From: Dimorphilus gyrociliatus
Lineage: Eukaryota; Animalia; Annelida
DNA length: 64,000 nucleotides
Assembly (NCBI GenBank): GCA_904063045.1
Contig: CAJFCJ010000011.1
Span: forward strand, 62,001 to 126,000
Direction: 5' to 3'
Part shown: piece by piece, positions 1-14,919 of the stretch
How positions within the stretch are numbered: the stretch's first letter is position 1
How the letters are laid out: each line of letters begins with the position of its first letter
Translations under genes and position numbers: made by a program
The notes under the pieces: generated by a model
What the model was told of the DNA's origin: nothing
What the model saw: only the letters and a program-made list of their open reading frames with translations
Database searches by the model: none

Positions 1-4131
<4,131 letters not shown>

Positions 4132-4187
4132 CTAATCCTATCCCGGGCTCCACTTGGCTGCTTTCCTCCGCTGCCAAGGTATTCGGA

Positions 4188-4195
4188 TCACGTGA
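4188..4195. promoter_or_regulatory. Palindromic E-box/CLEAR-like TCACGTGA in the EML-ZCRB1 divergent intergenic region
   Basis: Exact 8-mer within the 298-bp spacer between two divergent ATGs. Function is inferred only. Confidence 0.35.
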
Positions 4196-4393
4196 CACAG
4201 GTAAAATAAACTGGACCCGTATTCTACACGCATCGAATTGGTGCTTTCCTATGATGCTTTTACTACGCCTGCGCAGTTTATATCACAAGCTTAAAAACAA
4301 GCAGACGATATCGAAAAAGAAGAAAAATTAGACTTATTAATTGTTTTTAAAACATTTAAATAACTTACGCCAGGTTTACCGAGAACAGCGCCA

Positions 4394-5135
4394 ATGAGTG
4401 GTGGTATTGCACCAAGTAAAAGCACAGTTTATGCTTCAAATCTTCAATTTACCTTAACAAACAATGATCTTCACAAAGTATTTGAAAAATTCGGAAAAAT
4501 CGTCAAGTAATATTTATATCATGACCTCTAACATCAATTATAAGTAAAACTTTTAACAGAGTAACTATAGTAAAAGATAAAGAAACACGAAAGAGTAAAG
4601 GTGTTGCCTTTGTTCAATTTCTGGATAAGTTTGATGCCACAAAGGCTATAGAATCTTTAAACGGAACAGATTTATTCGGTCGCAAACTTAAGTGCAGCAT
4701 GGCGAAAGATAATGGAAGATCTACAGAATTTATCAAAAGAAGGCAATACACCGATAAATCTCGTTGTTATGAGTGCGGTGAAGAGGGTCATCTTAGGTAT
4801 GATTAATAACAAACAACTATTTATCTAAATAACTCAAATAGAAGATTTTCAGCTACAAGTGCCCGTTAAATGCTCTAGGAGATAGACAAGCTCCGAAGAA
4901 GAAAGAGAGAAAGGAGAAGATGAGAAAGAGGAAATTTGAACCAAATGAAAGGAATGTCGACGAAGAGGAAGAGAATATAGAATCTGACGACAATGCAGAA
5001 GATCCTGCTCTTGAATCTTTAGCAGCTATAATATGGGAAGAAACTGATAGAAAAAATGTCTCTCATGATGGATCTAAGAAAAAGAGAGTATATAAAAAAA
5101 GTTCATATTTTAGTGACGAAGAAGAATTGGAGTAA
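4394..5135 (+). CDS. ZCRB1: Zinc finger CCHC-type and RNA-binding motif protein 1 (U11/U12 snRNP 31K)
   Basis: [17 protein letters not shown]... RRM, followed by the [14 protein letters not shown] zinc knuckle. Exons 4394-4506, 4560-4796 and 4853-5135, with 53- and 56-nt GT-AG introns. Confidence 0.95.
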
Positions 5136-8248: not shown

Positions 8249-8791
8249 TTATTTGATTATTTATCGACCCAATTTCTTAATTGACTTCGTTCCTGAAACA
8301 ATTAAGTATTATATAAATTTTTTTGTTATTAGGGATATAAAAAATGACTTTTCGACCTGGATAAGCGCACAACAAGGGCACATAATATGTATGATTGTAT
8401 CGCAGATGGGGTGACTTACAATACCATATTCAGCCCTTATTTCTCCTCGAGTTAAACAACCAGTTACCCAGTGTAAACAACATAGTCCCAGAAATGCGTA
8501 GAGTAAACAATTTGCCAGCATAAATTGTTCACCTTGTCTCATTTCTTCTACTATGAAACCATACATACAACAAGGGCAACAGTAGGCTACTAGACATTGT
8601 TTGGGCTCCCTTATCATATTTGGCCCGCATAAATCATTTTCCCAATCTTCATAAGGGAGAAAAGACATTGGTTGATTAGCGAAACCGACATTTGCGGAGG
8701 AATAAGGGTTTTGTCCATGAGTTTGAAATGCATTTGGTTGAGTTTGAATAGCATTTGAAATAGACGGAACACTAGCTGTTAAACTATCCAT
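8249..8791 (-). CDS. PLAC8/cornifelin-family Cys-rich protein, copy A
   Basis: DWENDLCG...YCCPCCMYG...TRGEIRAEYGIVSHPICDTIIHIMCPCCALIQ, then a short intron (CAG|GTCGAA...TTTCAG) and last exon ERSQLRNWVDKIIK*. Confidence 0.88.
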
Positions 8792-9342
8792 TGATTTTAA
8801 TAGCGCAACATTCAGCTTTTATTCAAATTTTCAATTGATGTCATTGATTATTAATAATGGCGCGAGGAAATTACGTCAGAACAGTAAATTTCAAACAAAA
8901 ACAAAGGATTGAATAGATATGACTTCGTGGCATTTGTGATATTTTCGGTGAGTTTCTAGTTTTTAATATAATAAACTCAGGTAGTTTAGGTGAATGAAAT
9001 TATTTATGAAGAGATAACTGACAGAAATATAGGCCAATTTTTTAAAAATAAACTCTAGTAGATAGTATAAACCATGTTTAACGATAAGATTATATATTCT
9101 AAAAATAGAAATATATCATCATAGTAAAACAAGAAAAATAACACAAAAGAATGTTTCGTTTTATTATAAATGTAGAATTTATATGGAAAAAAATTGCCAT
9201 TTGTAAATTTTCTTTAATTTCGTTCTTAAAAAATAAATATGATAAATTTTTTTCCAGACATTTGTATATCACTACTGTTTAACGTCGATTAGTTTACATT
9301 CAATTATTAAGATAACACCTTCCCTTGTTTGAGGGCGTTACT

Positions 9343-9723
9343 TCAACTATTAAGAACTAATAATCCTCTTTTTGTTAAGCTTTCTTTCACGAGGTTGAAT
9401 ACTCTTAATTGATCTTCTTCTCTTAGAGCGAGTATTTGTTGAATGATTTTAGCTGGTTGCGCTAGTCTGTAATATTGATAGATGTTGTTAACTCTTCTTA
9501 CTTTTTTTTTTGTATACAAATAGGCTTTCTGTTTGCAAATCACATCAAATTCATTTATACTACAGCAATGCATGCCAAATTTACAATTATGGCAAAAAAA
9601 AAAGAAGAAAACAAAAAAAGAATAAAGAAAAGTTTAAGAAAAATGATTACGAGACAAACATGTACAAAGTATCACAGTTAATTGTTCAAAAATTGTCAAT
9701 TATTACCATGCTGCGTTGTTTTC

Positions 9724-9754
<31 letters not shown>

Positions 9755-9761
9755 TTATACA

Positions 9762-9798
<37 letters not shown>

Positions 9799-12700
9799 TC
9801 TGTACTCGAGCAAAACATTTTCGTTATGCCTTATTAATTTTAGTGTGGAACAAGACCCTTCCGTATCAGGTTGTCTTTTAACGTTTGATATAGTTCGATT
9901 TGGTCGGCGGAATTTAATTTGAGGATTGTTGAGAGTAACTTTGCCGGACCTACGGCTCTGAGAAAACATGCAAACAATTGTTAATAACTACAACAAAAAA
10001 AATTACAATGATTTAGCTTATTTTACTATAAACATCAAAATAATATAATACAAACATCAACTAAAATTATAGGAAATCGTGTGTTTTATACGATAGCTAC
10101 TATTAAATAGGGGAAATTTTTTTTTTAACTTACTTTATAAAGCTCGAATGGTAAACATGAACAAAAGTTGCCATTAAAAATTGACAATCGAATCTGTCCA
10201 TAATTCCTCCGTGGCCTGGGATTGTGTCACCAAAATCCTATAATTGAAAGAAAGAAAAAAAGAGATTAATTTAACTTATTAAGTTTAGCTTTATTATAAA
10301 GCTACAGTGCGTGTTATTTATTTATATGGCTTTTTGTTGATGTTGTTGTTATTTTTGTTTTTATACCTTAATTTTAAAAGCGCGTTTGAAACCGCTTGCA
10401 AAGAAACCACCAAAAGGACCAATAATTGATGCGAAAATCGAAAATGAGATAGAATGTAACATGAATGGGTACATTTTTACAGTTTCTAATTTCACCCCAA
10501 CCTGAAGAGACATAAAAATGCACATTAATTGATTTTATCTAAAAATAGTGTATAGTAAAAGCTATTTATTTACCAGTCCGTATAAAGTCTGTAGTACTTT
10601 TGGAAGTGTATAATCCGTTAATTGGAAAACGGGTACTCTTTCGCAGTCCATACTTAAGGAATCTTTACTTTCGTTGTATTCAATTGGACAAATGAAATAA
10701 TCGAATGATACGAGGCAATAAGATAACTGAAAAAAAAAAATTTAACCGAAACGATTGTTGCAGTTGTTTTACATTGGTATGTAAAAAGAGATAATTTTAA
10801 AAAAATCATATTAGGCAACCCACCACCATGCCAAATATAACAGTACTGAAAGCTCCGCCAATAAAACCTTCCCAAGTCTTTTTAGGTGACAGTTTTATTA
10901 AAGGAGTTTTACCAAAGAAGAACCCAAACAGATATGCCATGATATCATTGCAGATTATCATTGAAACCGGAACCAAGAACCTAAAGTGGTTTTAGAAAAG
11001 CGCAAAACGATTAGTGTAAACAACACGCAAACATAGTAATCAATAGATAGCATAAATCTGATAAACGACTACAGGATTATGATAAAACACAATAGATATA
11101 CTTTATAACGTACATTATATATTGAATTTTTTCAGTGCATTTAAACAATCTAATTCCTAATTATGTAACTAAACATAAAAGAATATGGTTTATAACTTTG
11201 TCAATTCTAGGAAAGAATTATGAATATAAATTCTTATATAATCCTTTTAAATTATGACTTTAGTCGTTTATCAAATATAACAAGAGAAGATATATTAAAG
11301 TAAAGAATATTACCATATGAGTCCTTCAAAGATATTTTGCATAATAAGATGGGATTGTGTGACAACAATCAACAGGGTTACGTGAGTCCATCCGAACTAC
11401 ATTAAGAAACAAATAGATTTTTTAACTCTAATAATAGAAAGGAAGATTGATAAAGTGCAAAATATAATTCACTTCTATTTCTCTTATTATGACTATAAGT
11501 TTTATAATAAAAATATAATTTACTTACAAGTGTAAATTGCTTTAGATAATGAGTTTTGACTAGGCTTAAAACAAAACCAACGAAGCCGCTAACGTATAGA
11601 GAGAAAGATATAAATCGATGGTAAGTTACAAATGGCTTGATAAAGTCCTGTATAAAAAAAAAAATAAATTATTTAAATAATTCTTATCTAATTAGCATAT
11701 TTATGATTATAGAATAATTACTGTTTTGCTGGCAAGTACACCAAAATATTGAATTAAGCTTTCTCCATAAAAAAAGTAGTTTGATGCTATTAAAAAGTAC
11801 CAGCTCAAGGTTCGGAACCAGGGTAAATCGTGAGATTTATAGACGGCGTAACCGATATTTATTATTTCATGAAAACATTTAATTTGTATAATAAAAATCT
11901 GTTTAGAATTAAAATTATATATAAAATATATATAGAAACATAATGCTATTTTATACTAACTAAAATCACTAAGGCCAAAGGTCCCAAGTATATGACTGCG
12001 GCAAAACCAAATATCATAACCCAAGTAAAAATACCGCGAATAATCCAATTTCTCCATCTAAACGAAAGTAATTTTTGAATATTAATTAAAGATTATCATT
12101 TTATTATAAGTTATAAAATAATTAAATTACCTTGGTGTTAAATCTTTTAAAGCGGAGTCAATTACTTCGGTTGTTTTATCGCTAGCTTGTGGTAGTTGTT
12201 GAGAAACATCTGGGTCTATAGACAAATCATCCGCTGTATCTCCCGAACCTGGATGATTTTCACTTCGCTATAATCGAAATAGGTGATATTCTATTAGTAA
12301 AATATATTAAAAATTATATATATATATATTTATACATATCTAAATTTCCAAACCAAGTTGGGCGATAATTTACTTACCTTTTATCTTATTAATCTTTATT
12401 CTAAGCATTTATTAAATCTATTTATAGATTGTGGGCAGTTTCATTTAGAATATATAGTAAAAATAATAGTTGGTCCATGAAATTCACAATACTTTGCAAA
12501 AATTCTGTATATAATTTTATATTTAACTTGTAGGTATTTTGCTATTTGCATTTATTCTTATTAATATTTTGAATAGTATTATGGTCTGAATTTTTGATAG
12601 TTTTTACATTGTTAGCTTTGCTTGATATAATCTATATTTTGTTGAGTCTGTATCAACATATTTTATAGTTATAAAACCATGTTGGCCGTTAATCATTTAT

Positions 12701-13250: not shown

Positions 13251-14919
13251 ATGGCGCTGGGTACGAGATGTTTGTTTGTTTGCTCTTATTCAAGGAGGTA
13301 TTTCTCCTGTCTTAGATCATCAATTCTAAAACAAAAGGTAAGAGTTGAGGAAAAAAACTATTTCTCACCATATATAGTAAAATTACGGTGAAACTTTTAG
13401 TAACTGTTACTTTTTTGCAAGGCTTTAGATTGGCGTAGTATTGTTTTATAAAGTCTGCAACATCAACAGCAATAAAAAGACGTAACTTGTTTTAATGAAT
13501 TTTAGATACAAAATAAAATGATATTTCCCCTGGCTTTTAATTTTATAGCGATCTCTAGGCCCCTTGCAATGTATTAGTATTCATTGATCGGTAAAACGAA
13601 CACTTCCGCGCCTAGTTGCCAGCTTCAAGGATTTGCTAATCAGAACGTATTGAATACAGATTTCATACCCGAGTGGCCTCTATGTACACTGCAGATTCTC
13701 ATCCGTCCAGTCTGGGAGTGGAGGTAAGTTGAAAAAAAAAAGATAAAAAAAATAGTAAAACTTAGAGATAAGAAATTGCTTGGAAAGCAGATAATTTTTG
13801 AAGAGCTATCCAGTAAATTGTATAATAAACAACGGCTCAAATGGCGATGTATATATGTATGTATTATTGATGACTGCACACTAATGGTTGGCGATCGATT
13901 CATAAAATGCGAAAAATACCAAATCGCCATCGCAAATTGCTAATAAAATAAAGAAAAATTGATAAGATTGCTTATGTCAACCATACTCGATGCTCGATAC
14001 CTCTTCAAAATGTTTGCAAACATTCCGCTAATCACTCTAGCGACTTGTTAGAAAATAAGAATAGTGTTTGTTTGGTATCGAAGATTGTCGACTTTAATAC
14101 ATCCCATTGACCTCTTGTTCAGGCAATTGACGCTTTGTTAATGACCACGTCGGTAGGCAGCCAATTCTCTCTCGTATTCCTATGCGACTTTATCAAGTAC
14201 AGAACACGACGCTTATCAATATTCATAATTGTAACGAATTCCTTTCACTCGACAAGAAATAGCTGATTATCTCAAACTTTTGATGTACAATTTAATAGAT
14301 TGCATACCATACTATATTAAATCCTTGAGCTAATTCACTTACAATTAATATACCTGTTGAAATTTAATTAGTGTTCGTAATTATCTAGGTTTCATTGCAT
14401 ATAATGAATGCTTACAGTTCAACAAGAGCGTCACTGTTCTATTTAAGTCATTTACAAATATCTGCTAGTGTCGTTTAGACCGAAAAAAAAAACCTAATGA
14501 TAGAAGACGGTTATTTGTTAAAGAAAACGAAGAAGAAGGGAGGAGGAGGGGGACGCGAGTGGGGAAGAGAAAAAAAAATCTTCTTCTTACGTGTCAACCG
14601 AATGTTTGTTTTACAATATATAATGTCTATTTTTTTCCCTTCACCAGTTTATTCTGTTTATGAATGAAGGATAGATCGTTAAATATAATGATATAATAAG
14701 AAAAGTATATATTATAGTTTATCGGTAGTTGTACTTTTTTTTTATTTTTTTTTTAATTTTCTCTGTGATAAAATCCATATTCTTAGTGAAAGCCTCCAGT
14801 TACGAAATGGCCCCTTTTATGGAAACACTGTACTAATATTTATCTAATAATTCCTTATTTTCTTCTCTGTCTTTAAATTCTGCTCACTCGTTTTTTTATC
14901 TTGTATATTAGATATACTA

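Follow-up and report, generated by a model that had tools for sequence, protein, structure and literature searches.

Tandemly duplicated terminal exons that are used in a mutually exclusive manner are known from Drosophila, where they make up the pip clusters and the 3' variable regions of PGRP-LC (PMC9013439). Two versions of CDP-diacylglycerol synthase (CDS) are found in vertebrates as the products of the genes CDS1 and CDS2, and the human enzymes differ in acyl-chain selectivity (PMC7018664); alternative messages of the orthologous Drosophila gene, termed CdsA-RA and CdsA-RB, are also on record (PMC4736822). We analysed a window of 64,000 nucleotides of the annelid Dimorphilus gyrociliatus (contig CAJFCJ010000011.1, positions 62,001 to 126,000), in which a reading of the sequence alone had noticed a CDS gene with two tandem alternative last exons. 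Very probably, this is a single CDS gene with a tandemly duplicated last coding exon, in which the donor at 10134 is spliced to either of two acceptors and two enzymes are produced.

The locus resembles the pip and PGRP-LC systems in having homologous tandem copies of a 3' exon, a single donor, one copy per message and a separate stop codon in each copy. Unlike them, the worm gene has two copies only, of 38-40 residues each, and these encode the peripheral tail of a membrane enzyme and not a domain; only weak complementarity of A and U runs was seen, and no competing RNA structure. As with vertebrate CDS1 and CDS2, there are two enzyme versions with related but distinct C-terminal tails. The vertebrate genes, however, are whole-gene paralogues which differ over their full length, whereas the worm versions are identical up to Lys402, and no evidence was found that would tie either worm tail to CDS1 or CDS2 specifically. 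The Drosophila messages RA and RB also stem from an orthologous CDS gene, but RA is contained in RB (PMC4736822), and the database isoforms labelled X1, X2 and X3 of molluscs, a nemertean, a spider and a springtail represent alternative CDS messages with no homologous tail swap. Alternative tails are mentioned neither in the CDS review (PMC7018664) nor in the Drosophila CdsA paper (PMC4736822). The duplication of the tail exon follows a known architecture, of which no report and no annotated case was found for CDS.

The CDS gene is encoded on the minus strand; its ten common exons are followed by one of the two terminal exons, which give isoforms of 440 amino acids (proximal tail) and 442 amino acids (distal tail). 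Every exon translation of the window is an exact substring, in order, of the public protein DgyrCDS8296 (CAD5119705.1, UniProt A0A7I8VTR2, 440 amino acids), which a search with the full-length protein of a relative had returned; the match confirms D. gyrociliatus as the source of the window. Splicing to the acceptor at 9957 would yield the 440-residue enzyme with a derived tail; splicing to 9466 would remove the proximal exon within an intron of 667 nucleotides and yield the 442-residue enzyme with the ancestral, canonical tail. Both products would share the same catalytic body, with every residue up to Lys402, and would differ only in a eukaryote-specific C-terminal element of two helices formed by the last 38-40 residues. 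The 3' part of the gene comprises the following features.

10237-10134, minus strand: exon 10, the last common coding exon, with the PGHGG..DR.D part of the CDS signature; corresponds to residues 368-401 of DgyrCDS8296.
10133-10128, minus strand: common 5' splice site GTAAGT; both RNA joints start at 10134.
9957-9840, minus strand: coding part of the proximal alternative last exon; third position of the split Lys codon, followed by 38 codons and a TAA (9842-9840); corresponds to residues 403-440 of DgyrCDS8296.
9839-9467, minus strand: stretch between the two coding parts; 3' untranslated region (3'UTR) of the proximal isoform and, together with 10133-9840, intron of the distal isoform; scanned for polyadenylation hexamers and repeats.
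9466-9343, minus strand: coding part of the distal alternative last exon; third position of the split Lys codon, followed by 40 codons and a TGA (9345-9343); gives the 442-residue isoform.
9342-9284, minus strand: 3'UTR of the distal isoform, with the hexamer AATAAT at 9308-9303 and a probable poly(A) site near 9284.

Exon 10 ends in phase 2 at 10134 (TTT ATA AA/GTAAGT). The sequence ...TTTTCTCAG precedes the proximal exon, whose first base is 9957, and ...ATATTACAG precedes the distal exon, whose first base is 9466; each exon follows a CAG and begins with the A that completes the Lys codon (AA/A), and either of them fits the donor of exon 10. The proximal stop codon is separated from the distal acceptor by 374 nucleotides. 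The coordinates that the sequence-only reading had given for the end of exon 10 and for the two downstream exons, with their CAG acceptors, matching phases and stop codons, all hold. Its gap-free alignment of the two tails was reproduced as well: the common 36 residues align with no gap, and BLASTP returned 12/33 identical residues (36%) and 23/33 positive ones at an E-value of 7e-9. A profile was built from the CDS tails of other animals (117 tails, none of them from Dimorphilus) and run against the six-frame translation of the window. It found only two significant pieces, the distal (E 1.7e-14) and the proximal exon (E 6.2e-10), the next best match having an E-value of 0.26. A six-frame tail search of the 77.9-Mb genome returned the same two copies only. 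By these matches the two terminal exons are homologous, and their likeness goes beyond chance.

Both copies are open, as had been claimed: they are in phase and are recognised as CDS tails by the independent profile. The vertebrate C-terminus that the earlier reading had quoted agrees with the retrieved vertebrate tails (P0011, P0032). Its remark that the open reading frame track hides the proximal exon is correct in part: the longest open reading frame there (72 amino acids, 9751-9969) does lie in another frame, but an open reading frame of 45 amino acids in the correct frame exists and appears only at a lower length cut-off. One copy is translated per message, the proximal exon ending in TAA with no donor-like site within 9957-9840, and no joint from the proximal to the distal exon was present among the run contigs. 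Word-index protein searches with the open reading frames of the two exons gave no candidates, short queries of this kind being uninformative about longer relatives, and a PDB sequence search with each tail gave chance matches only.

Only three public sequencing runs hold words of this stretch: X1, a coral metatranscriptome; X2, an RNA run labelled 'invertebrate metagenome'; and X3, a D. gyrociliatus run of 2017. The (TA)n tract at 9713-9803 was left out of the read search as a repeat. In X3, the nine introns that separate the ten common exons are all removed in one contig of 1297 letters and depth 842, with zero mismatches; the joint of exons 9 and 10 (10236/10366) is present in this run. X3 is clearly complementary DNA, because every other intron of the CDS gene is cleanly removed. 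The two alternative joints were found in the same run.

Joint 9957/10134: 176 letters skipped; X3 depth 903; CT..AC on the plus strand, equal to GT..AG on the gene strand.
Joint 9466/10134: 667 letters skipped; X3 depth 444; CT..AC on the plus strand, equal to GT..AG on the gene strand.

The junctions from 10134 to 9957 and to 9466, for which RNA evidence had been sought, are thus both present, at depths that compare with 842 for the gene body, and intronic and intergenic contigs of X3 have depths of 9-17. Since X3 holds both joints, it is not the case that only one junction is ever observed. On the shared side each joint contig extends over 29 letters, the length that a k=31 graph gives when it branches after the shared first A. 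The distal-exon contig of X3 has its start at precisely 9466 and its end at 9284. The earlier claim that one gene makes two enzymes with different tails is supported by these joints together with the open, in-phase exons. X1 and X2 hold near-identical spliced pieces of the CDS gene as well, which suggests that D. gyrociliatus or a very close strain was present in the sampled material.

Membership of the gene in the CDS family was established from several lines of comparison. Single exons match PF01148 (CTP_transf_1) with 74.7, 38.3 and 48.6 bits, the curated cut-off being 24, and a PF01148 search of the D. gyrociliatus genome returned a single CDS gene (75.7 bits). The motif KDX5PGHGGX2DRXD, the CDS signature (PMC7018664), is found at residues 367-384 of DgyrCDS8296, where it spans the junction of exons 9 and 10. 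Identity over the full length is 58-72% to CDS of Capitella, Owenia, Ridgeia, molluscs and arthropods. The top Foldseek match of the CDS model is 4q2g_B, the CdsA of Thermotoga maritima (4Q2E/4Q2G), with a probability of 1.00 and a template modelling score of 0.63 by target. The sequence match to bacterial CdsA stops at about query residue 395, which leaves the tail outside the solved bacterial fold; likewise, profile positions 232-264 of the 264 of PF01148 fall on exon 10 (E 1.3e-12), and the family profile stops at the last residues of this exon. Judged by these comparisons, the gene is an orthologue of animal CDS, the eukaryotic CDP-diacylglycerol synthase. Enzymes of this family convert phosphatidate and CTP to CDP-diacylglycerol, an activity that is predicted for both worm isoforms. 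No other exon of the CDS gene was found to be duplicated in the first 20 kb of the window. The upstream exons, checked against the X3 contig and for phases and GT/AG borders, are as follows.

12962-12921 (with the ATG), 12267-12131, 12057-11961, 11898-11722, 11647-11528, 11396-11314, 10980-10824, 10726-10574 and 10501-10367, minus strand: the nine upstream common coding exons.

The two tails relate unequally to those of other animals. A profile search of 1.84 billion representative sequences with both tails returned mostly open reading frames of terminal exons of other animals. The distal tail shows 58-69% identity to the tails of the best relatives, against 28-50% (median 33%) for the proximal tail. 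A distal-like tail ends all the annelid CDS proteins retrieved, namely those of Capitella, Ridgeia and Owenia and four transcripts. Because of these identities and the uniformly distal-like annelid tails, the distal exon is placed as the canonical, orthologue-like tail, and the proximal exon as the derived copy. This refines the description of the exons as tandem paralogues, in that the two copies are, on the same comparison, not equivalent. Conserved columns were defined as those in which at least 90% of the other tails share a residue class. The proximal tail keeps the class at 14 of the 15 conserved columns, against 8 of the 21 variable ones (Fisher p 8e-4), a pattern by which the proximal copy is not decaying at random. 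In the AlphaFold2 model of the proximal isoform (alignment of 62 sequences), helices are predicted at 406-415 and 418-435, with predicted local distance difference test (pLDDT) values of 81-89 over residues 411-440 and 66 over residues 401-410. The model of a relative with a canonical tail (P0037) has the same two-helix element at 407-415 and 419-435. Both worm tails have a net charge of +2 and similar amphipathic moments.

Of 89 loci of relatives that were retrieved, ten genomic ones include exon 10 and the tail, or an equivalent context. All ten (L007, L008, L011, L012, L018, L020, L025, L028, L032 and L035) have a single tail. In L007, the protein encoded by exon 10 is 100% identical to that of Dimorphilus, the third codon positions being saturated, and the intron leading to the canonical tail is about 158 nucleotides long, so that there is no room for a second tail exon. 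No pair with the same body and different tails was found among 120 full-length homologues. The annotated isoforms of 11 other invertebrate species, checked among the members of 9 further clusters, display N-terminal differences or loss of the tail and no homologous tail swap. At the present sampling, the duplication appears to be specific to the Dimorphilus lineage: because ten loci of other eukaryotes have one tail, it would have arisen after Dimorphilus split from every sampled relative. The age ascribed to it in the sequence-only reading, which called it an old exon duplication, is unproven in view of the same ten loci.

Several observations on individual loci accompany these results. A second tail-like match in L010 (2685-2714) is due to chance, and L029 was ruled out as a case of two tails, the two tail starts on this eukaryotic metagenome contig belonging to two complete tandem CDS genes (1619-2716 and 3940-5064). 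L012, a contig of 50 kb from a compact and AT-rich genome, has one tail, but its exon 3, which encodes the first transmembrane helix, occurs in two tandem copies (2456-2551 and 3237-3332). Each copy is 97 nucleotides long and has an AG acceptor and a GT donor, and inclusion of both together would break the frame; they are a candidate mutually exclusive pair. Exon 3 of Dimorphilus is present in a single copy. Isoform X2 of Argopecten irradians (P0162) ends right after exon 10 (SFISTR) and lacks the whole tail; CDS messages with no tail may occur elsewhere.

The choice between the tails would be made by competition of two 3' splice sites, which would act as an alternative-last-exon switch, and is probably linked to cleavage and polyadenylation 3' of the proximal exon. 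Cleavage kinetics or a regulator are alternative candidates for the deciding step. The pyrimidine fraction over 20 nucleotides is 0.70 at the proximal acceptor versus 0.50 at the distal one. The hexamer scan placed an AATAAA at 9755-9750, 85 nucleotides 3' of the proximal stop codon. Around this only AATAAA, the proximal 3'UTR contains a (TA)n microsatellite of about 90 nucleotides (9713-9803) that could fold into a near-perfect hairpin. X3 contigs reach depths of several hundred on the proximal exon but only 212 at 9502-9712, as would be expected if the majority of proximal messages ended close to the (TA)n tract. On the distal side, position 9284 is the end of a contig in X1 as well as in X3, two runs that are unrelated, and a poly(A) site of the distal isoform near this position is probable, contigs as such being unable to show RNA ends.

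Further features of the terminal region were noted. A strong donor-like GTAAGA (9501-9496) is found 35 nucleotides before the distal acceptor, just after an A10 run, and an X3 contig ends exactly at 9502; this end could be a graph branch at the homopolymer, a site of internal priming or polyadenylation, or a U1-binding site. A mini-intron of 35 nucleotides that would begin with this GTAAGA at 9501 and end in the AG at 9467 is unlikely, the smallest confirmed intron of the gene being 62 nucleotides long and X2 being unspliced there; the median intron of D. gyrociliatus has 66 nucleotides (PMC7854359). In the RNA, the shared donor is closely followed by an A10 run (10118-10127) and the proximal acceptor is preceded by a U8 run (9995-10002), and a U run (9593-9603) and a second A10 run (9502-9511) precede the distal acceptor. 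Competing RNA structures of the selector and docking type were considered and rejected, the pairing being confined to A and U runs and too weak and low in complexity.

Some of the evidence weighs against a gene that is regularly spliced to two functional tails. The two junctions rest on a single run from a single study, and each of them on a single contig; the library type of X3 is not on record; and no contig was seen that covers the distal isoform at full length. The depths of 903 and 444 are contig depths, a poor measure of isoform ratio, and cannot rank the isoforms. For the proximal isoform the contigs show no poly(A) site as such, the only signs of one being the AATAAA and the fall in depth. 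An X2 contig (9433-9584) reads through the distal acceptor and could stem from pre-mRNA, DNA or a long proximal 3'UTR. None of the other species sampled has both exons, and purifying selection on the proximal copy consequently rests on the pattern of one sequence. Finally, the two tails have no known difference in function. The single contig per joint, with 29 letters on its shorter side, and the unrecorded library type would agree with junction contigs that are graph chimeras of X3, or with X3 not being RNA. Such an artefact is extremely improbable, however: both joints match the predicted GT..AG boundaries to the letter and preserve the frame, a side of 29 letters is typical of a true branch at k=31, all other introns are cleanly removed in X3, and the annotators' own gene model uses the proximal junction. 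It is likewise improbable, if less extremely so, that only one tail matters and the other junction reflects splicing noise onto a decaying copy, be it a distal relic or a recently exonised proximal pseudo-copy. The public annotation has the proximal isoform only and the relatives manage with a single tail, as this explanation would expect. The distal copy, on the other hand, is a well-conserved canonical tail with a depth of 444, and the proximal one has a depth of 903, over an intron background of 9-17; moreover, both copies are open and of near-equal length, and both are recognised as CDS tails by a profile built without them.

The explanation by which both messages are made but the tails are interchangeable, the duplication being a neutral leftover kept by chance or for dosage, deserves more weight and is possible, though doubtful. 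It agrees with the same predicted two-helix layout, the equal net charge and the similar amphipathic moments of the tails, and with the identity of the conserved core positions between the copies. The proximal tail, however, has changed at about two thirds of its positions and yet keeps 14 of the 15 conserved columns, which argues for a constrained surface that was re-tuned and not for drift, and both junctions are abundant. The genome is also very compact (PMC7854359), which would make the long retention of a useless insert of 500 nucleotides in the terminal intron less likely. On the reading we prefer, of one gene spliced to either of two tails, the tails might tune something besides catalysis, such as partner binding, placement or stability. 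That they make functionally distinct enzymes, differing in partners, placement in sub-domains of the endoplasmic reticulum, stability or acyl-chain preference and used by stage, tissue or sex, is a tentative suggestion which we consider unlikely at present; the species has dwarf males. If true, it would make the worm gene a one-gene counterpart of the vertebrate CDS1/CDS2 split, and the eukaryote-specific C-terminal two-helix element a regulatory module.

CDS is the gateway enzyme to phosphatidylinositol and cardiolipin. The eukaryote-specific tail lies outside the only solved CDS structure, that of the bacterial TmCdsA, and no function is ascribed to it in the CDS literature consulted; an animal that has one CDS gene and naturally exchanges the tail offers a clean handle on the role of the tail. 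The public protein DgyrCDS8296 ends in the proximal, derived tail, and its cluster at 90% identity has one member. The distal tail was found in none of the public proteins retrieved, and the distal isoform appears to be missing from the public protein set. A public entry with a lineage-specific derived tail can mislead comparisons of C-termini that are based on orthology.

The CDS gene is flanked by two other transcribed regions. Downstream, on the minus strand, an intronless-looking open reading frame at 8309-8791 encodes 160 amino acids rich in cysteine and is covered by an X3 contig (8266-9072) of low depth; its transcript starts about 200 nucleotides beyond the distal CDS poly(A) site. On the plus strand, a neighbour at 13271-13723 diverges from the CDS promoter region, and its GT..AG intron (13336-13657) is spliced in both X1 and X3.

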